Assembly: GCA_004431415.1 (NCBI GenBank)
Contig: QPMI01000409.1
Location: 434,001 to 498,000 of the forward strand
DNA length: 64,000 bases
From: Cyanophora paradoxa CCMP329
Lineage: Eukaryota; Plantae; Glaucophyta
Direction: 5' to 3'
Shown here piece after piece: positions 5,500 to 25,387 of this stretch. The notes below the pieces were generated by a model. That model was not told the origin of the DNA and did not search any database. It was given only the letters and a program-made list of their open reading frames with translations. The translations under genes were made by a program, and so were the position numbers. Every line of letters starts with the position of its first letter. The stretch's first letter is position 1.

Positions 5500-8400
5500 T
5501 TACTTCTTCTCAAGCTTATCAAGGATCTGACCGACTGCGATAGGGATGCGGGTGCCTGGGCCAAAAATGCACTTGACACCTGCCTTATACAGCTCATCAT
5601 AGTCATTCTGGGGGATCACACCACCAGCAATCTGTCCGAAAGGTTTCAGTCCGTACAAGGTTTGCAGCCAAGAAGCAAACACTGAAGTGTCTTACCACTC
5701 CGATGTGCTTTCCACCCTGCTTCTGGAGCTCTGCAATAAGCTCAGGGATGAGGGCACGGTGGCCAGCTGCTTGAGAGCTGACGCCAACAACATGCACGTC
5801 GGCTTCAATCGCCTGAGTGGCCACCTCCTTCGGGGTCTGGAAGAGGGGACCAATATCTACATCCCAGCCTGCATGCACAGTCAGGTTGACTTACAAGAAC
5901 ATAACACACGAGAGCGTGTACCGAGATCGCTGAAGCCAGAGGCGATGACCTTGGCTCCACGGTCATGACCATCCTGGCCCATCTTAGCAACCAGAATGCG
6001 GGGCCGACGGCCCTCCTTCTTCATGAATTCCTCCACCTGAGAAGAGATTTTAGGATGTTGAAGATGTTCAAAAGAGATGTTGAAGAAAAGCTACACACCC
6101 GCTTGAGCACGGCCTGCACCTCGCCCTTGCCATCATCGTAGGAGCTGACATAGGCCCCAGTGACAACGGAAGCGCTTGGTGAGTAGCGGCCGAAGCTCTT
6201 CTCCAGGGCGTCCGAAATCTCCCCAACAGTGGCACGTGCAAGAGCACACTCGACTGCGACAGCCAGCAGGTTCGAGTTCATATCCTTGCAGTCGGCTTTG
6301 TTGTTTGCTCCTAGTGCCTCGAGCTTCTTCAGGGCCGCCTCAACCTTGGTCTTGTCACGCTTGGCCCGGGTTTCTTGGATGCGCTTGACCTGCGAATCAC
6401 GGACAGCCACATTGTCGATCTTCCGAACTTCCATAGGGTTGGCAGCATCCCTGAGAACACATGTTGGTTAAGACGGAAATGTACAATGATCATTCCAGAT
6501 GTCAAGCCCATTCCAAGACGCACTTGTCCGATTTGTACTTATTGACACCGACAATAATCTCCTGGCCAGAATCAATGCGTGCTTGCTTGCGGATGGCGCT
6601 CTCTTCAATGCGGCGCTTGGCCATGCCAGACTCGATCGCCTTGGACATACCACCAAGTTGCTCAACCTGGAAAGAAATAGATGAGACACAGAGACTCAAC
6701 ATGCTTGAAAAACGAGCCACAAAGTGCAGACCTCCTCGATAGTAGCGAGAGCCTTGTCGTACAGATCTTGGGTCAACGCCTCAATGAAGTACGAGCCACC
6801 AAGGGGGTCAGCCACACGCCGGATGCCTGTCTCGTCCTGAAGGATGAGCTGTGCATCCAAGCTGTGTCAGGCCGAATGCGTTAAATCAACAAGATGCATC
6901 ATGAAAGTTGCAGACCTGTGTGTTGCGTGCAATGCGAGCAGAGAACTCAGTAGGCAGTGCGATAGCCTCATCGAAGCTGTTCGTGTGGAGCGACTGTGTG
7001 CCACCAAGGGTTGCAGCCATGGCCTCCACTGTCGTGCGGATAATGTTGTTGTAAGGGTCTTGCTCCGTGAGCGAGTAGCCTGAAAAAAAGCGCATCATTA
7101 CTTAGTAATCTGACAGATGACAAGATCGGAGCAGACTGCTCACCAGATGTCTGGCAGTGAGTGCGAAGAAGCATAGACTTCTCGCTCTTGGCATTCGCCT
7201 TCTCCTTCATGAGATGCGCCCAGAGGCGGCGAGCTGCACGAAGCTTGGCAATCTCCATGAAGAAGTTCTGCATAGATTTGCATCAGATTCCATGCAATCA
7301 TTCGGATTCGTAGTAGGAATGGTCTCAATGTGTGCACCATGCCAATGGCGAAGAAGAACGAGAAGCGAGGGGCAACAGTGTCAACATTCAGACCCGCACG
7401 AGCGGCGCATTTCACGTATTCCTGGAGGGAAGAGCACGTCAGCGAAGAGTGTTGGAGATGCAGGTATGAATACAGAAGCACACCAGGCCATCAGCAAGGG
7501 TGAAAGCGAGTTCAAGCGCACTGTCAGCACCGGCCTCCTGCATGTGGTAGCCCGAGATGGAGATCGAGTTGAACTTCGGCATGTTCGCACTTTGGTAGGC
7601 AAAGATCTCCGAGATGATGCGAAGGGAGGGCTCCGGTGGGTAGATGAACGTGTTCCGGACCATAAACTCCTTCAGAATATCGTTCTGGATCGTGCCCGAC
7701 AGCTCGTTGAGTTGCGCACCCTGCTCCAGGGCCACGCCGATGTACATCGCGAGGATAGGCAACACGGCGCCGTTCATTGTCATACTAACGGAGACCTTGT
7801 TGAGCGGAATCCCTGCGATGCGCTCGTTTAGCGCGCGCCAAGCTGCCAGTCAATCGCAAGGTACCGTCGAAAAGAATCTTCATGTCTTCAATGGAGTCTG
7901 CGTGCGGTCGTCAGCGAACAGGGGATCAAATTTGACAGCTAAGCCCGCGAACCGATCGCCACTCCAGCCATTCCGACGTCTGTGCACGCGATACCATGGT
8001 GAGCAGAACCCATGCGAAGATCTAATGGCTACGGGAGAGGCGCAGCGGACGCACCGCCAGCGACGCGAGGATGATCAGAGTCATAGCCGCGGTGCGTTGG
8101 AAGGTCGAATGCGACAGAGAGGCCTTGCTGGCCGGCCTTCAAGTTTCTCTTGTAGAACGCATTCGACTCCTCAGCGGTACTGAACCCTGCCGAGCCCTGG
8201 TGAGCCGAAGGCTATCGATGACGCGACACATCTGGGCGAGTTCGCGCACCGGCGTACTGACGCACGGTCCACGGCTTGTATGTGTACATAGTTGCGTCTG
8301 AGGAATCGCGAAATCAGCTTCTGACACGCGTGTGCGTGTGCGGTCGGCGGATGACGCACACGGCCCCCGCGAGAACGGGAAGACGCCAGGCATCTCATCC

Positions 8401-8719
8401 AGCTCGGACGCGGCCGTCCCTTGAAGGTCAGCCTTCGTGTAGAGAGGCTTCACATCGATTCCTTCGGGCGTCTTCCAGATGAGCAGCTCCGCGGGGTCCT
8501 TCCCGTCGACCTCCTTCGTCGCAAGCTTCGCCCACTTCTCCGGCAGCGGCTGCACAGGCCGTGCCTGCAAAGCGCGTGCTCAATACCGCGGTCATTGACG
8601 CGGTCGACGCCTGACCGGCGGACGCCGTGACGGACCTTGTTAGCGAGTTCGCGTGCTAGGCGAGGTGCGCGTGGGCCCACGACAGGGCGCACACGCACGG
8701 ACCGAAGTGCCGTGTACAT
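5500..8719 (-). CDS. MMUT: Methylmalonyl-CoA mutase (adenosylcobalamin-dependent), mitochondrial precursor, multi-exon
   Basis: Exons read [86 protein letters not shown] and the B12-binding [13 protein letters not shown]. The gene ends at GPGTRIP...KLEKK*. The leader [12 protein letters not shown] is Arg-rich. Confidence 0.96.
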
Positions 8720-9099
8720 CCTGGACGGCCGCGAATGCTACGCTCAGGACGCGGCGCGCGGGTCGTCAAGTGTCAGACCGGGTACCCCCCGGGGACAAGC
8801 GAAGTGGCAATTGCAAGCTTCGAGCTTCAGTGCAGCGCGCGTGCAGGCCGGCGCCGGTCACGGCACAGGTCGGCAGGTATACGTTGCCGCTTTGGTGGCG
8901 GCGCTATCGCGCGGCGCCGACCACGCCGCTTTGCATTAGACCGATCGAATTCCAACACCTTAACTGTGCTATTTTCAGGGGTTCCTCACCAATCACTGAA
9001 GCGTGATCACTGTACAATCCGAGCGAAATAGAAGGGGGAGCGCGGGAGCGAAATCGAGTATGTTACACCAGAGGACGGGCCGGCCGCCGACGCCCGCCC

Positions 9100-11001
9100 T
9101 CAGTGGAAGGTCGTGCCGGCGAGGCCGTCCAGGAGGGCGGCGATGTACCGCACGCGGGCGAGGTTCTGGGCGTAGTCCAGCCTGCGTGGAGGGGGACCTG
9201 TCAGAGCAGGGCAGGCCAGGGCGCGCGATACGCCGTTGAGAGTGCACCGCGTCGGCCCGAGCAGCGCCACAGCGCCCTGAACGGCGCTCCCATCGTCGCG
9301 GCCGCCTGCGGGGGCTCCCCGGTCAGACGGCGAAGGCGCTCGGCTGGGGGCGGCGGCAGGCACCGTAGGGGGCGACCAGGAGAGAGCAGTCGCGAATGCC
9401 GTTTCTGAGGGGCGTCGACATCATCTCGCCGCCGATGATCACGCTCGGCCCCCTGTGCGGCGCGAGGCTGCGAGTCAGCGCGGCGGACAGGGGCAGCCCG
9501 GAGGCGGCGTAGGCGCACGAGGGGAGCAGGTCCTCCGAGCAGAGCGAGGCGGCCAGCAGGCCATCCTCAGTTGCGCTGACGAGCTCCAGGACACGCTACA
9601 GAGACTGTAAGCAGCGAAGACAGAGAGAACGCGCAGCGGGCGGGGCCGGCGGGGCCGCGCCTGGTGATTGCTGGCAAACTCGGGCTGGAGGAGGACGTCG
9701 GCGAGGCCCTCGATGGCGGTTGCGCTGGGCGCCGAGCTCGCCCGCCGCTCCGACTGCAGTACGCTCAGGAGCGCCTGCGCGACGCGCGCGCAGATGGCCG
9801 CCCCCGGCGAGTCGGCCGGCTCGTCCTCCATCGTGCGCGCCATCTGCGCGCGGGTGAGCGGCGGAGCCGGGGCGGGGCGGGGCGGGGCGGGGGGAGCGGG
9901 GGGAGCGGGCCTGGTTGGCGAGCTCGGGGTCGACGAGGGAGAGGCCGGAGACGGCCTTGCCGATGCGGAGGGCAGCGCGGCGGAGCTCAGCCTCGGGCAC
10001 GGGCTCGTCCCCATCTCCCAGCTCCAGCGGGACGAGCGTCTTCAGGATGCTCGCGTCGCTGAGGATGACGACGAGGAGCGCCGCCCCGCCGACCGCCACC
10101 GCGTCCACCGCCCGCACGTACACGAGGTCCGTCCGCGCCCGTGGGGGCGTCACGATCGTCAGGAGGCCCGCCCGCCGCGCCAGCGAGCGCGCCGCCGCGG
10201 CCGCCCACGCCTCCGGCTCCATGGGGCCGTCGGAGAGCTCGCGGGCGATCGAAGCCCGCTCCTCCGCCGAGAGCCGCACCTCCTCCATAAGCGAGTCGAC
10301 GTACACGCGGTAGCCACGCTCCGACGGCACACGTCCTGCTCACGGCCGGTTCGAGGGGGCAGCGGCTCAGCGCGCGGGGGGCTGCGCACCGGATACTTGA
10401 TGGGGCTGGTGAAGCAGCCCGCTGCTCTCCAGGGCAGCCAGGTCCAGGCGGATTGTGGCGGGGCTTGCCTCGTTGGTGCCCTCCAGGAATGACGACGCAA
10501 CCGGCGACCCCACCTCCACATAGCTGCGCGGAAAGGCGCAGAAAGCGTTCAAATGTGCAAAAGCAAGGAGGTCTGGGTTTAGGACCGCCCGGCAGACGGT
10601 TACGGGCGCGAGGACGCGGCACGCGTAGGGAGTGCGCACCGCTCGACGAGGCGGCGGAGTACTTCTGCGCGCCGGGCCCCTACTCTAGAGGCGAACAAAG
10701 TCTCCTGGAGCTGCACCGCGTCCCCCACTTGGCCGTCGGGTGCGGCGACCCCGCCGCGCGGCACCCAGCGCTTCCGGGGCGCTGGCGCCGGGTCCGATGC
10801 CGGCGCCGGGCGGGCAGGGGTCTGTCCCGCGCGCACGACCCGCTTGGTTCGCGGCCGTCCGCGTGGTCTCTTCGCTTCGCTGGATTGTGCGCACTCCACG
10901 GCAAAAGCGCATGGCAACGCAGCGGACCTCACTGACGGAAGTACACGAACCTCCGCGCCACACACGGCGCCCCCGAGGAAGGCAGCCTCTTGGCCGGCCA
11001 T
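9100..11001 (-). CDS. hrcA: Heat-inducible transcription repressor HrcA homolog, intron-containing, with ~95-aa N-terminal extension (putative plastid transit peptide plus AT-hook)
   Basis: Spliced product: RRAEVLRRLVER|YVEVGSPVASSFL...SPATIRLDLAALESSGLLHQPHQVSG|RVPSERGYRVYVDSLM (winged HTH); IEGLADVLLQPEF; PSVIIGGE...RDCSLLVAPY; GAVALLGPTR|LDYAQNLARVRYIAALL...TFH*. All HrcA blocks are present in order. Confidence 0.9.
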
Positions 11002-11196
11002 CAATCTGGGAGGGCGAACTGGACCCAGGGTACACCTCACCAAAAGTTGGACGCTCGACGTTCGCCAGTCCAGCTAGTTTCCGCTGAAGCGTGCGCGCGC
11101 GTGAGAAGCCGGAGCAAATCCGGCAGCGCTCACAAGCGCTCACCGCGCATCTGACAAACCTGAGCACGCAGAAGCTCAGCGGAGCGCCTACTTGAA
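11002..11196. promoter_or_regulatory. Putative bidirectional promoter between hrcA and UBP6
   Basis: Divergent ATGs at 11001 (-) and 11197 (+) are separated by 195 bp. Confidence 0.5.
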
Positions 11197-13610
11197 ATGC
11201 CGAAGCGTGCGCGCCATGCGCACGCTGCATACCTTTGTCGTAACGCGCCTATACCGCAGTGACGGTCAAATGGAGCGGGAAGGTCTTCGATGTGGATGTG
11301 GACTTCAACGAGCCGCCCGCCGTGTTCAAGTTCCAGCTCTTCTCGCTCTCCGGAGTGCCTCCTGAGCGCCAGAAGGTGCGCAAGCCTCCGCATGAGAGCG
11401 AATGACTGGCGGCTCATGCGTACGCGCAGATTATGGTCAAGGGCGGTATGCTGAAGGACGATGCGGACTGGAGCACGCTCGGACTGAAGGAGGTGCGTTG
11501 CTGCGTGCGGCGGAGCCCGAGCGCGCTTGACCGACTCGGAAGGGGTCGACGCTCATGATGATGGGCTCGGCGGAGCAAATTCCCGAGGCGCCGAAGGAGC
11601 AGGTCAAGTTCGTCGAGGATATGACCTCGACCGAGCTGCAGGCGAACATTGTGGTGCGATTCGCCGGCAGTCTGGTTCTTTGGCACGTCTGCTGAAGGAC
11701 TAGCAGGCCGGCCTTCCCGCGCACGTGAAGAACCTTGGAAACACGTGCGTGTGATATTTATGAAGATCTTTTCCTTTTTCCATTGCTGATTCATCTCTTC
11801 CTTTGGTTGCTTTCCTCTTGCGTGGTTCCACAGGTGCTATCTCAACGCTGTCCTTGGCCTCCTCCGGCACATCCCGGAGTTCTGCGCGGGCTTGAAGAAG
11901 TACACTGGACCGTCGCTCGGGATGCATGACCAGGGGCACAACCTCGCCATCGCCATGCGGGATCTCATCAGTGAACTTGACGGCTCTGTGGAGTCTGTCA
12001 CCCCCTTCCGCCTCGTCCACGTTCGTTTCTTTATGTGCCATTCCGTTTTTTCATTGCACTTATTTATTTTTATTCGCTTTGCAGACCGTTCGCTCTGTCT
12101 TCCCCCAGTTCAGCCAGCAGACGCCTCAGGGACACTTCATGCAGCAGGACGCCGAGGAGTGCTGGACTCAGGTTTGAATACCGCCCCCCGCTCTCACGTG
12201 GCCTCGCTGAATGGGAGCAGTGTCTCAGCCTCCTCGCACAAAAGATGGTCGAAAATCAGTCTGGGGACTCAGCGAACAAGCGGAAGAACACCATTGACCA
12301 GCTGTTTGGCATTGATCTGCGCACAACGTACGTATTTGGTTTTATGAAGGTTTTAGAATGAGCTAATGTAGAACGTGCAGGTTGAAGAACGAGGAGAGTG
12401 CCGAGGAGGGCTCGTCTGAAACGAGTGAGAGTGTTCAGAAGCTCAGCCTGCACCCCCAGCAAGAGTCCCGGCTCTTTTTCGAGTGCATCCGCAAGGTGCT
12501 TTCATGCCTGGCAACGTCCTTTTTCATCTCATAAAACTTCGCTCTCCCAACCAGAGCCTCGAGGGAGAGCTCGTGAAGAGGTCAGAGACCCTTGGCCGAG
12601 ATGCCAAGTTCAAGAAGATGCAGCGCATTGCACGCCTGCCTTCATACCTTGTCGTGCAGGTGCTCTTGCTGCTCAACAATTCCCTGAATTTCCCTGATCC
12701 ATCTTGAATGGTGCAGTTCGTGCGGTTCGAGTGGCGACCGGAGACAAAGACTCGCTGCAAGATCCTGCGGGTCTGTTGATGTTCACTGCTTGGCTGTGCA
12801 TTATCTTAGTAGCTTTCTGGCAGGAAGTGGCTGTGCCTCAGGTTCTTGACATGTTCGACTTCTGCACTGATGATCTTAAGGACCGGCTGAAGGTGCCACC
12901 CCTCCGCACTTCGCTTTTCGCGCTCGTGTTGATGCGGAACCGGACAGCCTGTTCGTGAGTCGCTGCGCATTAAGGAGGAGGAGGAGCTCCGCCTGCGCAA
13001 GGCCCAGGTACGCAGAGATGATGCCACCACACATCAGCCTGCAAGACAACTCATCGCCCGTGAGCAGAAGACGAGCCCCGATGGCGGCCCCTCGTCCTCG
13101 AATGCAGGCAATGGCGCCACAGAGGCTGCGGTGTGTGCTTTTGTCCCCGATCGCACGGCACTTTCTCACTCCTTTGGAGCAGCAGCCGGTCATAGGTCTG
13201 GCGGCAGCCACTGCTGCTGCAGCTGCAAAGAAGCACGCTGAGGAGTCCAAGCGGCTCAAGGAGCCAGGTGGGCTTGGCTCTTTATGTGGGGCGCTCGGTC
13301 ACAACAATTTTTACAGTGGGCGAGTGCGAGACTGGGCGGTACGAGCTTGTGGGCGTTCTCACCCACATGGGCCGTGCTGCTGATGGCGGACACTACGTGG
13401 CCTGGGCGAAAGAGGCAGCTGGTGAAATCATTGCTGCGAAATTTTCTCGATTGTCTGGATGCTCATTGCTCTTCTGCTTCAGACTCCTGGATCAAGTACG
13501 ATGACGACAAGGTCAGCCTTGTAAAAGACGAGGACATCCGTAAGCTCAACGGCGGCTACGGTGATTGGCACATTGCGTACCTCTGCCTCTACCGTGCCAA
13601 GAACTCCTGA
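11197..13610 (+). CDS. UBP6: Proteasome-associated deubiquitinase UBP6/USP14 (UBL + peptidase C19), multi-exon
   Basis: MPKL|TVKWSGKVFDV...FQLFSLSGVPPERQK|IMVKGG (UBL domain); Cys box KNLGNT|CYLNA; MQQDAEECWTQ; His box YELVGVLTHMGRAADGGHYVAW; GDWHIAYLCLYRAKNS*. Confidence 0.95.
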
Positions 13611-20700: not shown

Positions 20701-23700
20701 GCCCCGCGCGCAGGTCATCGGCAACTACGGCTCCGAAGGGTACCCCGGCTCCGCGTCGCGTCGCCCTCCACGCCTCCTGCCGACGCGGGGCGGGGCGGGG
20801 CGGCAGGCTGCTGGCCTTCGCGATCGAGGGGGGCGACGAGGCGGGGCGCCTGGAGCTCCCCTTCAGGGTCGCCCCCCGCCGCCTCCGCGTCCTCCTCCCC
20901 AAGCGCCTGCCCCCCGGCGCCACCCGCGACGCCAAGCGCAAACCGCCCGCCGCCGCCGCCGCCGCCGGGAGCAGCAGCTCCGGCGGCGAGAAGCGGCGCC
21001 GCGGGAAGAGCGACGAGGACGCGATGGAGGAGGATGAGGACGAGGAGGAGGGCGAGGAGGAAGAGGGGGAGGAGGGGGAGGTGGGGCGGAAGGGGAAGGG
21101 CGAAGACGACGAAGAAGGACAGGGGGCGTGCCGGCTGCGGGTGCGGCACGGGACGGTGCTGTCGGGCCTCGCCGTGCAGCTCGTCGACGAGCGCGGCCGC
21201 CCCGACAAGTCCGTCTCCGGCGAGCCGGTGCGCCCCCGCCGCCCGCCGGCAGCGCCGCCGTGCCCACCAGCACGCCTCGCAGCTCGAGCTCTCGTGGGAC
21301 CCGAGCCAGTCCCGCAAGTGCGGCCCGCCGCCCCAAAGCCCCCCGCCCGCCCGCCCCCGCTCGCTCGCCGGCCTTCCGAGCGAGAGCGCGGCAGGTTCCA
21401 GAACGGGCGGGCGACGCTGCCGGACATCCGGGCCTGGGAGCTCCCGCCGGCCGGCGGCAGCGGGGGCGGGGAGGGGGAGGGGCAGGGGGCGCGGGCCTGC
21501 CACGTGGCCTTCGCTGGACTCCGCGCCGACCTCTCCTTCTCCGTCTTCTGGGGTCCGCTGCTCCCCTCTCCTCTTCTCTCCTTTGCGTTGCTTAGCTTTT
21601 CTTTGCATTGCCTTCGCCTCACGCGTGTGCGCAGACGCGCCGCAGCGGCTGCGGGGGGCGCGCGAGGGGCCCCTCCCCGTGCAGAACAGGCAGCCGGCCT
21701 CCCTCCCGCTCCTCCTCCTCGCCGCCTCGGGCGACCCCGTCCCCTCCAGCGCCTTCGCCCAGGCCCGCCCCCGCGCCCCTCCCGCCCCGCCCCGCCGCCT
21801 CACGCCCCTCCGCTCCGCAGAGCGCGCACCTGGAGCTCTCCCTCGAGGAGGGCTCCCCGCTCGCCCTCGAGGTCGACCCGGCGGGCCTCGCGGTGGCCCC
21901 CGAGGAGGCCGGCGCGCTCCGCGTCTCGGGCTGGCGCCTGCGCGGCCCCGTGGATCTCGCGGGGGGCGAGGCCTCCCTCCGCGTCACCGTCCTCCGCTCC
22001 GAGCCGGCCCTGCCCCCCGACCAGCGCGCCTTCTCCGTGCCCCTCGCCCTCTCCGCGGGGCCCCCGGCCCGCCTCGCCGTCGTGGGCGAGGACGGGGCGG
22101 AGCTCGCGTCGCCCCTCGAGCTGCACAACGGGGCCGCGCTGCCGCGGCTCGCGGTGCGGGCGGTGGACGAGGACGGGTCGGTGGCGGCCTCGGCGGCCGG
22201 CGCCGTGCACGTCGAGGCCGACGAGGCCCTCCAGCTCGCCGGGCCCCGCCTCCCCGTCCGCATCCCCTCAAGGCCGGCCTCGCCCCCTCCCCTCCTCCGC
22301 GCCTCCCTCGTCCGCCCCCCGCCCCGCCCCGGCCCCCTCCAGCCGCGCCGCTGACCGTGCCCGCCCCGCCCCGCCCCGCCGCGCTCGGCCTGCAGCGGGA
22401 CCGGAGCCGCCTGCGCGAGGCCGGCGTCCACTCCATCCGCTTCGCCCTCGTCCCCGCCGGCGCCTCCGCCGTCCGCCGCCGCCCCGCCGCCTCCGCCGCC
22501 CGCCCCGTGCGCCGCCTCGCCGCGCCCCTGCTCCCCGCGCGGCCTGAGCGGGGCGGCAGGAGGTGGAGGGGCGGCGGTGGCGGTGCGGGTGGTGCCGGGG
22601 CGGAGCGGGCGGAGCGCGTCGTCCTGCGCCTCCCGCCCGGCGGCCTCGCCTGCGAGGCGGGCGCCCTCCTCCCCGACATCCCCGTGCGCCGCCCCGGCCC
22701 CGTCCCCGCCCCGCCCCCGCCCACGCGGCGCCGGGCAGGCGGAGGTGCTCTCGGAGACGGGGGCGCCCCTGCGGCTCCCCGCCGGCGCCCTCCTCGCCCT
22801 CCACGTCCACGCCTCCCGCTACAGCCCCGACGAGGCCCGCCGCCCCCGCCCGCCCCGCCCCGCCGCCTCCGCCCCCTCTGAGGCCTCCGCAGGCCCCCGG
22901 GGAGCCGCCGGGGTACGTCTTCCGGGAGGTGCCGGCCCCGCGGGAGGCGATCCGGCACGCGCTGCGCTGCGAGGTCCTCGCCGCGAGCGGCGCGCCCGAC
23001 GCCTCTGTCGCCCCGCCGCCTGCGACCTCACCGTCCGTCCGGGTGCGCCCCGGCCCTCCGCCGTCCCCGCCCCTCTGCTCGGCCCGAGGGCCGAGGCGGC
23101 GTGCAGGGGCGCCGCACGCGCTGCGGATGGCGGCGGAGGGCGGGGCGACGCGGCTGCAGCTGGGGACGGGCGCGGCGCTCCCGAGCCTCGCCCTCGAGCT
23201 CCTCGACCGCTTCGAGAACCCCGCGCCGGCGCCCGCCGGCCCGCCCCTCCGCCTCGCCTACTCCGTCTCCGGCTCGGGCGGCGCCGCGGAGGGCGCGGCG
23301 CCCCAGGTGGCGGCGGCGGCGGGGCCGGCGGCGTGGCCGGCGGGGCACGCCAGTGTCGTGCTGGCCGGCCTGACCATCGGCGACGGGTGCGGTCGCCCGC
23401 GCCCCTCGCCCCCGCCCCCGCCCCCGCCGCGGCCGGCTCAGCCTGGGCTCCTGCGTGCAGGGCGAGCGGGACGTACGAGCTGAGGGTCTCGGTGGAGGGC
23501 CTCCCCGGCGTCGCCCCCGCCGCCATCCACATCGACTTCACCAACGGTGCCCGCCCCCCGCCCGCCCCGCCCCCTCGCTCTTCTCCCCCCAGGCGACGCG
23601 GGCCGGGGCGGCAGCCGAGACGGAGCGGCTGGCGGAGGAGGCGCAGCGGGCGGAGCGGAGGCGGCGCGAGGCGGCCGCGCGCGAGGCCGACCAGCGCCTC

Positions 23701-25387
23701 CGCGCCGCCACCAGGTGCGCGGGGGCCCGCCCCGGCCCCCGCCCCCGCCGGCCTCCTCCGAGCGGCGCGGGGCGGCGCGGGGCAGGGAGCTGGCGGAGAA
23801 GAGGAAGGCGGCGGGGGAGGCTGCGGCGGGGGCGAAGCGGGCGCGGGAGGAGGCGCGGCGGGCGGAGGGGCGGCTGCCGGGCGCGGCCCCGACGAGGAGG
23901 CGCTGGCGGGGCTCGTGCGGGGGCGGCGGGAGGAGGCGGCGGCGCTGCAGGCGGCGGCGGCCTCGGGGGCCGGGGGCGGGCGCGAGGCGAACGGCCTCCG
24001 CATGCGGGACGCCGGCCTCCAGCGCTTCATGGCGACCGTCGCGCAGTCGCCGCCCCGCGGGTGCGGCCCCCCTCCCTCCCAGCGGGCAGCAGAGGGCTGA
24101 GAGGGGCTGCGGGGGGCCTGCAGGTTCCTGGGCTTCGTGTTCAGCCTGCTGCGGGTGGACGACGACCGGGAGGCGGAGGCCCTCGCCTGCTTCCTCGGCC
24201 CCAACGCCCAGGCCCGCCCCCGCCCCGCCCGCCCCCGCCCCGCCCGCCTCGCCCCTCCCCGCTGAGGCCGGGGCGGGCGCAGACGGCAGTGTTCCAGGAG
24301 GACCGCGACGCGCGGTCCTTCGAGCAGAACAACTGGCGCGCCGGCTCTGGGCCTGACCCGCCCCCCGGCGTCTCGTCACACCGCTGCGCCGCGCGTCGCG
24401 CAGGTACTCGGGGCTGCGGATCCTCGCGCTGGGCTCCCTCACCGACGACGCCTTCCTCCCCGCCAGCCGCGTCGACCCCGCCTCCCCGCAGCAGGCCCGC
24501 CCCCGCGGCCCCCGGAGCCGAGCCTCGCCCTCCCGCTCGCCCCACTCACGCGCCCGCTCGCGCGCAGCTCATCCGCTTCTCGACGCCGGCGCCGCCGGGC
24601 TCCTCGTACCTGATCAACAGGGTGCAGCTCGCCGACCCCTCCCTGCGCCGGTGCGCCCCCCGCGCCGCCTCCGCCCCAGGAGAGTGGCAGTGGCCCTCCC
24701 GTCGTGAACCTGGCGCGCGGGCAGGACGCTGGTGTGGTACCTGGTGCGGGACACGCTGTGCGTGGAGAGCCTGGAGGAGCGGCACCGCCTCGTCGACGAG
24801 CACTGGCGCGGCAAGCAGGCCCTCAACGTGCGCCCCGCCCCGCAGCCCCCTCCCCGCCCCGGCTCCCTTGGTGCGACGCGCCGGCCGCGGGCAGGTGGTG
24901 GTCCTCCCGAGGGTGGACGGGGCCGGCCGCGTCGACCCCGCCTCCGTCCGCGTCTTCCGCCGGAACGCCATCCGCAGGCCCGCCCCCGCGCGAGCCGCAG
25001 GCTCCTTGCGCTGCTGACGGGCGGCGGGGGCGCAGGACGGGCCCGCCGGAGCCGGCGCGGGTGACCCTGGGGCGGAGCCGGACGGCGGCGCAGGAGGCGG
25101 CCGAGCGCCTCGCGGAGGTGGGCCGCCAGCTCGAGGCCCTCGAGGCGGTGCAGCGGCGGCGCGAGGAGGCGGCGCGGGCGGCGGCGGCGCAGCAGCGGGC
25201 GGAGGCGGAGGCGGCGGCGGCGCAGGAGCGGGCGCGGGCGCTCGAGAAGGAGCGGGACGCCGCCGAGGGCGAGCTGCGCGCCCTCGCGGGGCAGGCGCCC
25301 CGCGGCACCGTCGCGGGGCCCTCCGCTGGGACCTCGGCCTCGGGCCCCGGGGGCACGAAGCGGCCCCGCTCGACGGACGCCGCCTAG
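14721..25387 (+). CDS. SMCHD1/GMI1-like protein: N-terminal GHKL ATPase, long beta-rich middle, coiled coil and SMC hinge; many exons
   Basis: GHKL motifs FEVALSELI|DNSLEAT, IEISDDG|YGMS, SEFSR|FGIGAKSAIFFFG; ETYHFYLHG; LKYFPVAKNRETVP; CWPRIRGFLFLSSEFEPQSHK, all parallel to recalled SMCHD1 blocks. Hinge-like FLGFVFSLLRVDDDREAEALACFLG...YLINRVQL...TLVWYLVRDTLCVESLEE is flanked by coiled coils. The C-terminus has an NLS-like KRPR. Confidence 0.85.
20506..20560 (+). repeat. (GCCCC)11 pentanucleotide microsatellite inside an intron
   Basis: Eleven perfect GCCCC units. Shorter arrays of the same unit occur in many introns across the window. Confidence 0.9.

Follow-up and report, generated by a model that had tools for sequence, protein, structure and literature searches.

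A nuclear, spliced gene for an HrcA-type repressor with an N-terminal leader in Cyanophora paradoxa and its possible role in the control of plastid chaperone genes

The hrcA gene and its transcripts

A gene encoding a homologue of HrcA, the bacterial repressor of heat-shock genes, was identified on the minus strand of a 64-kb stretch of Cyanophora paradoxa CCMP329 DNA (contig QPMI01000409.1, positions 434,001 to 498,000; the whole stretch is called the window, and its numbering is used throughout). The gene extends from ATG 11001 to stop TGA 9100-9102 and corresponds to the public model tig00020554_g10933.t1 (eukprot; label P0001) of 415 amino acids (aa). P0001 was the sole protein returned by a word-based search with the open reading frame (ORF) of exon 3 (99% identity). 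The coding sequence (CDS) built from RNA-supported exons contains 1410 nucleotides (nt), that is 469 codons and the stop, and is divided into eight exons by seven introns of 54-116 nt, with the cuts set on GT/GC..AG (Table 1). In the genomic sequence, the pieces of the protein lie in different reading frames. The locus holds a repressor of bacterial type that has introns, a leader and retuned residues for reading DNA and is apparently split from its operator by a genome boundary.

The stretch is present in twenty public runs of Cyanophora paradoxa, and the contigs of four of them were compared over positions 8900-11300. The runs X1, X5 and X8 are of RNA type and represent three studies; X15 is a DNA-type run. 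A single 1586-nt contig of X5 consists of 8929-9180, 9247-9304, 9363-9451, 9518-9595, 9661-9843, 9911-10334, 10389-10523 and 10640-11006 and contains no deviating letter. The contigs of X1 and X8 agree with it, and seven stretches are skipped in the RNA-type runs, while the contigs of X15 stay colinear with the genome through those introns that they cover. The spliceosomal introns proposed in a first-pass annotation made from the letters alone are thus borne out by spliced contigs from three studies, although one in-frame intron (9453-9518) had been overlooked there. This intron is also spliced in P0001, and in X8 a 13-nt loose end at 9518 equals 9439-9451, which is consistent with splicing. 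The same annotation had left the acceptor near 9597-9606 ambiguous between an upstream AG that would put a TAG in frame and a downstream AG that avoids it. The downstream, TAG-free AG is the one used in X1, X5 and X8, with the exon starting at 9595, and the TAG-containing isoform is seen in no contig. Intron 3 (9844-9910) has no GT dinucleotide anywhere inside. In a genome so rich in G+C, donors of the GC type may be frequent and may mislead gene predictors.

The N-terminus of the encoded protein differs from that of the public model. Each exon translation is in register with P0001 from P0001 residue 7 with an offset of 54, and P0001 equals the RNA-supported protein from residue 61 on; its first six residues (MRFCRG) differ. 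P0001 was used as the stored reference for residues 61-469 of the 469-aa protein, and the exons were searched singly. The model takes as its start an ATG near 10912 that is out of frame, and it contains a predicted extra intron in exon 1 (10823-10912, minus strand). This intron is shown by no RNA contig of X1, X5 or X8, the exon-1 contigs of all three being unbroken from 10640 to 11006-11012; the annotated N-terminus is therefore probably wrong and masks the leader. No ATG lies upstream on the minus strand between 11001 and 11100, and exon 1 contains no alternative in-frame Met ahead of the DNA-binding domain. Because exon 1 is unspliced and no other start is available, translation must begin at ATG 11001. 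For practical use, the analysis yields a corrected model of the gene, with 469 aa, the true start and two GC-AG introns, that is ready to be expressed and tested.

The gene had been taken from the outset for a eukaryotic nuclear gene, and this is upheld by the removal of its introns in RNA and by its eukaryotic neighbours. Bacterial contamination or mis-assembly, for which nothing speaks except the bacterial family of the protein, is ruled out by the comparison of RNA and DNA contigs, and we give it a negligible chance. Seven spliceosomal introns are kept in the DNA reads and are missing from the RNA contigs, and the gene is flanked by a USP14-like gene and a methylmalonyl-CoA mutase exon. Its G+C content and intron style also match those of the Cyanophora paradoxa genome, which has 67.6% G+C and 9.2 short introns per gene (PMC6704402).

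Table 1. Exons, introns and adjoining region of the nuclear hrcA gene in window coordinates (UTR, untranslated region)
Feature	Positions	Strand	Evidence and remarks
Exon 1 (CDS part)	10640..11001	-	ATG 11001, leader, start of HrcA winged helix; RNA continuous in X5, X1, X8
Intron 1, 116 nt, GT-AG	10524..10639	-	Joint 10523>10640 in X1, X5, X8
Exon 2, recognition helix SPATIRL and wing PHQVSG of winged helix-turn-helix	10390..10523	-	TIGR00331 15-58, E 6e-9
Intron 2, 54 nt, GT-AG	10336..10389	-	Joint 10334>10389 (cut +1) in X1, X5, X8
Exon 3, wing end (RVPSERGYRVYVD) and first half of HrcA C-terminal domain	9911..10335	-	TIGR00331 62-185, E 2.9e-14
Intron 3, 67 nt, GC-AG, 91% G+C	9844..9910	-	Contig pieces abut 9843|9911 in X1, X5, X8
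Exon 4, with GLADVLLQPEF motif	9661..9843	-	RNA contigs; P307, E308, F309 conserved
Intron 4, 65 nt, GC-AG, downstream acceptor	9596..9660	-	Joint 9595>9661, ends CT..GC, in X1, X5, X8
Exon 5	9519..9595	-	RNA contigs and translation in register
Intron 5, 66 nt, GT-AG, in frame (retention would add 22 codons)	9453..9518	-	Joint 9451>9518 in X1, X5
Exon 6 (VIIGGE ... CSLLVAPY)	9364..9452	-	RNA contigs; I346, G347, E349, Y369 conserved
Intron 6, 58 nt, GT-AG	9306..9363	-	Joint 9304>9363 in X1, X5, X8
Exon 7 (... VALLGPT)	9248..9305	-	RNA contigs and translation in register
Intron 7, 66 nt, GT-AG	9182..9247	-	Joint 9180>9247 in X1, X5, X8
Exon 8, last 26 codons, stop TGA 9100-9102, 3' UTR to about 8929-8935	8929..9181	-	Contigs reach 8929 (X5), 8935 (X1)
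Divergent intergenic/5'-UTR region shared by hrcA and the USP14/UBP6-like gene	11002..11090	.	HrcA contigs end 11006-11012; plus-strand donor 11090

Family, fold and relatives of the protein

P0001 matches the NCBIfam model TIGR00331 (hrcA) over positions 3-335 of 338 (E 3.9e-52, 177.9 bits) and the Pfam model PF01628 (HrcA C-terminal domain) over positions 5-213 of 215 (80.1 bits against a cut-off of 22.2, E 3e-22). The exon-3 ORF alone matches PF01628 with E 0.0021. By sequence homology, P0001 is a member of the HrcA family that has diverged past the threshold for automatic naming at NCBI. A phmmer search of the PDB returned 1stz (E 2e-12), whereas exon 3 alone gave only chance matches to the PDB, the whole public model being needed for the 1STZ match. 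The AlphaFold2 model (59 sequences) has a predicted local distance difference test (pLDDT) score of 87.1 and a predicted template modelling (pTM) score of 0.82 and is confident apart from the leader. Chains A and B of 1stz were the top Foldseek matches of this model (1stz_A, E 1.8e-16) and were followed by IclR-type regulators with E values of 1e-5 or weaker. The near full-length TIGR00331 match, the PF01628 score above its cut-off and the three-domain fold shared with 1STZ agree with the first description of the protein as a complete HrcA.

The HrcA of Thermotoga maritima (PDB 1STZ) is the best PDB match both by sequence and by fold, with template modelling (TM) scores of 0.59-0.61 by target length. 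It reportedly consists of a winged helix followed by a GAF-like domain with an inserted dimerising domain, and the Cyanophora protein has the same domain order. The two differ in that identity over the structural alignment is 19%, the global root mean square deviation is 10 Å, which is compatible with another domain orientation, and 1STZ is without the N-terminal extension carried by the Cyanophora protein. The bacterial HrcA/CIRCE systems of Bacillus subtilis and Synechocystis sp. PCC 6803 share with the Cyanophora protein full-length, colinear homology to TIGR00331 and PF01628 and the motifs GPTR..Y, QPEF and IG.E, and their expected targets, groES, groEL and dnaK, are present in the Cyanophora plastid genome. 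In contrast to bacterial hrcA, the Cyanophora copy is nuclear, contains seven introns, encodes a leader of about 105 aa and lies outside an hrcA-grpE-dnaK operon, unlike its nearest bacterial relative; its repressor and presumed operator would also sit in two genomes. The recognition helix of the Cyanophora protein has Leu for the usual Asn, and its wing reads PHQVSGR in place of PHTSAGR.

Conservation was counted in an alignment of P0001 with an unbiased set of 203 homologues of 300-400 aa, most of which came from an exhaustive HMMER search. The Cyanophora protein keeps 38 of the 40 columns that are conserved at ≥85% in these homologues. Both misses are adjacent in the wing motif, namely S110V (198 of the 203 homologues have Ser and none has Val) and A111S in P0001 numbering. 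Beside them stands T109Q (Thr in 167 of 203, Gln in one), and the recognition helix carries N93L (ATIRN to ATIRL; Asn in 170 of 203, Leu in two). The kept residues of the DNA-binding domain are R56, P74, V75, S77, S87, A89, T90, R92, P107, H108, G112, R113, P115, G119, Y120 and R121. In the AlphaFold model, the recognition helix spans 88-100 and is accompanied by the wing strands. The divergence of ATIRN and PHTSAGR, which had already been noticed at first reading, is thus real and unusual among the 203 homologues. Constraint is seen everywhere but at exactly those sites that are presumed to contact DNA, and this speaks for a changed operator or reading mode and against decay.

The best non-self matches of the protein are Chloroflexota-type proteins or unnamed proteins from metagenome-assembled genomes (MAGs), which share 34-42% identity with it and are of bacterial length. 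Cyanobacterial HrcAs share about 29-32%, and the resemblance to cyanobacterial HrcA that the first-pass annotation had named is not supported as stated. The exhaustive search of representative sequences gave a best non-self match of 42% identity, and every sequence checked was bacterial. The best matches listed in a metagenome scan are relatives with 26-30% full-length identity; three short matches reach 44% and cover only the winged helix-turn-helix. The HrcA clusters of a language-model atlas are all bacterial, the cyanobacterial cluster coming first among equals. The nearest bacterial relative (P0171, from the cluster of P0023) is encoded in a classical hrcA-grpE-dnaK-dnaJ operon on metagenome contigs (L100/L101, 4001-9026). 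No other eukaryotic HrcA stood among the best matches listed in the word-based search, the checked matches of the exhaustive search or the metagenome scan, which does not prove absence. Two longer matches (P0053 and P0128) were considered as eukaryotic precursors and rejected as internally duplicated bacterial sequences.

A maximum-likelihood (ML) tree of 48 rows was calculated under LG+C20+F+G4 with posterior mean site frequencies (PMSF). These rows are a subset of 94, from which most of the Lachnospiraceae, part of the Chloroflexota and Acidobacteriota rows and six matches without a name were dropped; a quick tree of all 94 rows agrees in outline. The Cyanophora protein is sister to a Chloroflexota clade (ultrafast bootstrap 91, SH-aLRT 78) inside a Chloroflexota and Actinomycetota group (95/80) and outside the cyanobacterial clade (100/100), on a very long branch of 1.66. 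Dayhoff-6 recoding lessens the Ala/Arg/Gly bias that comes with a GC-rich genome; under it the Cyanophora protein still falls among Chloroflexota-type sequences (78.7/77). The phylogeny therefore does not bear out the endosymbiotic origin as first claimed; yet placing the protein with the cyanobacteria costs 4.04 log-likelihood units and is not rejected by the approximately unbiased (AU) test (p 0.347). Given the length of the branch and this AU result, an endosymbiotic origin is neither shown nor excluded, and we lean slightly towards a non-cyanobacterial donor.

Leader, presumed plastid targets and competing explanations

The leader comprises about 105 aa before the first conserved HrcA residue, so that the extension first put at about 95 aa stands as such and is corrected in length. 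The first conserved Arg (P0001 R56 plus the offset of 54) is preceded by 109 residues, as against 3-12 in bacterial homologues. Residues 1-43 are rich in Ala and Val, with Phe8, Phe33, two basic residues and four acidic ones; residues 44-58 contain eight basic residues out of 15 and an RGRP core (KRPRGRPRTKR at 44-54; DNA about 10840-10872); residues 59-105 are Pro/Ala-rich. The transit peptides of Cyanophora mapped by Köhler et al. have a median length of 63 aa (PMC4510345). Phe occurs in the first 10 residues of 49 of 77 mapped cyanelle transit peptides and within positions 1-18 in 145 of 187, and cleavage follows Val at -3 with Ala at -1, or Arg at -1 (PMC4510345). The N-proximal Phe claimed at first reading is Phe8, within the first 10 residues, and the candidate cleavage site V56-R57-A58|G59 fits the cyanelle pattern. 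Judged by these sequence features, import of the protein into the plastid is plausible.

The RGRP core could also be read as an AT-hook. RGRP occurs 64 times in the six-frame translation of the window (128,000 residues), and in 12 cases at least four Lys/Arg residues lie in the flanks. An AT-hook in the leader is a weak proposal because RGRP is this frequent in the window and because the block would be lost with the transit peptide if the precursor were cut at VRA|G.

[quoted passage not shown] Bacterial HrcA is kept active by GroEL and is released on heat stress. In Synechocystis, HrcA represses groES, groEL1 and groEL2 through CIRCE (PMC2758279). The cyanelle genome encodes DnaK, GroEL and GroES, as the first-pass annotation had stated, under consecutive CDS numbers in U30821 (supplement of PMC4510345), so that the genes classically controlled by HrcA are found together there.

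We consider it slightly better than an even bet that the nuclear HrcA is imported into the cyanelle and controls plastid chaperone genes there. The gene is transcribed, presumably from a short divergent promoter, and its seven introns are spliced out; translation from ATG 11001 gives a precursor of 469 aa. Residues 1 to about 40-60 of this precursor most likely act as a Cyanophora-type transit peptide and would deliver the protein to the cyanelle, which is the only cell compartment with bacterial-type chaperone genes (dnaK, groEL and groES). What the data establish is the gene with its splicing and expression, the family, the fold, the leader and the atypical residues for reading DNA; import, the target operon and the dependence on heat and GroEL are inferred. 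An HrcA dimer would occupy a CIRCE-type inverted repeat before groES-groEL, and perhaps before dnaK too, where it would hold back the plastid RNA polymerase as long as the temperature is normal and be released on heat stress, as in bacteria; dependence on GroEL may likewise be expected. Because four residues of the helix and wing differ from those of nearly all HrcAs, the operator, or its reading, is expected to be somewhat unlike canonical CIRCE. As a tentative extension, the HrcA-operator circuit may be split over two genomes in such a way that the altered recognition helix (Asn replaced by Leu) and wing (TSA replaced by QVS), perhaps together with an AT-hook, co-evolved with a modified plastid operator, the gene possibly having come from a Chloroflexota-like donor and replaced the endosymbiont copy.

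Several observations weigh against control of plastid chaperone genes by an imported HrcA. The equivalog cut-off of TIGR00331 (197.2 bits) is higher than the score of P0001 and is not reached. The residues likeliest to read DNA (N93L, T109Q, S110V and A111S) are altered, and another target or weaker binding is possible. A Phe in the first 10 residues is weak evidence, being expected in about one in five random proteins by a rough estimate; the first 43 residues of the leader hold four acidic ones; and the KRPRGRPRTKR block would also serve as a nuclear localisation signal (NLS). The terms 'HrcA', 'repressor' and 'heat-inducible' do not occur in three supplementary files of PMC4510345 (cyanelle proteome and terminal amine isotopic labelling of substrates, TAILS), a data set of 262 proteins that is biased to abundant ones and in which a low-abundance regulator is easily missed.

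The protein could be imported but retuned, through its changed recognition helix and wing and possibly an AT-hook, to a different site, serving a regulon other or wider than groESL or acting as a general AT-rich nucleoid-binding protein, which we regard as unlikely. This would account for sole misses in the wing (S110V and A111S), the rare T109Q and N93L, the very long branch and the RGRP core with its basic flanks, and the cyanelle genome is AT-rich compared with about 68% G+C in the nucleus. The remaining signature residues of the DNA-binding domain are intact, however, and RGRP may be there by chance, given its number of occurrences in the window, or may go with the transit peptide. A protein that stays outside the plastid, with the basic block as NLS or AT-hook and the repressor acting on host genes in the nucleus (or cytosol), is a live if rather improbable alternative. 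The resemblance of KRPRGRPRTKR to a monopartite NLS and an AT-hook, the absence of the protein from the cyanelle proteome lists (PMC4510345 supplements) and a leader that is less hydroxylated and more acidic than a textbook transit peptide would fit such a protein. On the other hand, the window contains no CIRCE-like site, even with three mismatches, Phe8 and the length of the extension fit cyanelle import, and basic stretches are normal in transit peptides. We know of no HrcA that acts in anything but a transcription system of bacterial type.

A decaying or functionless relic, transcribed into a product that no longer binds DNA, is very improbable. The long branch, the altered DNA-reading residues, the score below the equivalog cut-off and the lack of a close eukaryotic relative among the best matches listed would be expected of a relic, but the frame of 469 codons is intact over eight exons, the protein retains 38 of 40 conserved positions and has a confidently predicted, complete fold, and assemblies from three studies contain spliced transcripts.

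If the circuit of imported HrcA and plastid operator is indeed split, the repressor comes from the nucleus, the operator and the chaperone operon have stayed in the plastid, and the host sets the plastid heat-shock threshold. Such a circuit would be a simple, testable case of a host taking over the stress response of its endosymbiont and a natural experiment in repressor-operator co-evolution across two genomes of opposite base composition. Little is known of how plastid genes are regulated in early-branching algae. Sigma factors are among the nuclear regulators of plastid transcription, and Ycf27-Ycf30 are encoded in the plastids of red algae and glaucophytes; to our knowledge, the nuclear regulators described are mostly sigma factors. 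As a presumed bacterial-type regulator of plastid genes, HrcA would resemble sigma factors and Ycf27-Ycf30, and sigma-factor genes are nuclear as well; it differs from them in being a dedicated repressor for which one operator is known. No report of an algal, plastid, chloroplast, Cyanophora or cyanelle HrcA or CIRCE was found in the literature searched, which did not cover subscription literature. An hrcA entry in a Porphyra expressed sequence tag (EST) list was rejected; it stands among grpE, dnaK and Tn916-type matches and looks like bacterial contamination.

Genomic surroundings

The head-to-head neighbour that had been called UBP6 is confirmed by a spliced plus-strand transcript with GT..AG joints 11090>11172 and 11206>11260. 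The short 5' introns of this USP14/UBP6-like gene (11091-11171 and 11207-11259) are spliced in RNA contigs, and its first coding exon has the ubiquitin-like domain of USP14/UBP6 as best match (1wgg_A, E 1.9e-7; Pfam ubiquitin, E 0.0011). Since the transcripts of hrcA and of this gene are at most about 80 nt apart, a shared bidirectional promoter is suggested. On the other side, about 360 nt downstream of the 3' end of hrcA, the first exon of a methylmalonyl-CoA mutase gene (Pfam PF01642, E 2.8e-7) lies at 8139-8570 on the minus strand.

The G+C content of the window ranges from 53 to 84% per 2 kb, with the highest value (84%) at 22001-24000. Contigs of RNA-type as well as DNA-type runs are interrupted, or continue into unlike sequence, at 9058-9075 and 10231-10248, and one 2014-nt DNA contig touches both places with 18-nt matches. 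These breaks are probably due to short GC-rich repeats that confuse the assembly and not to real rearrangements.

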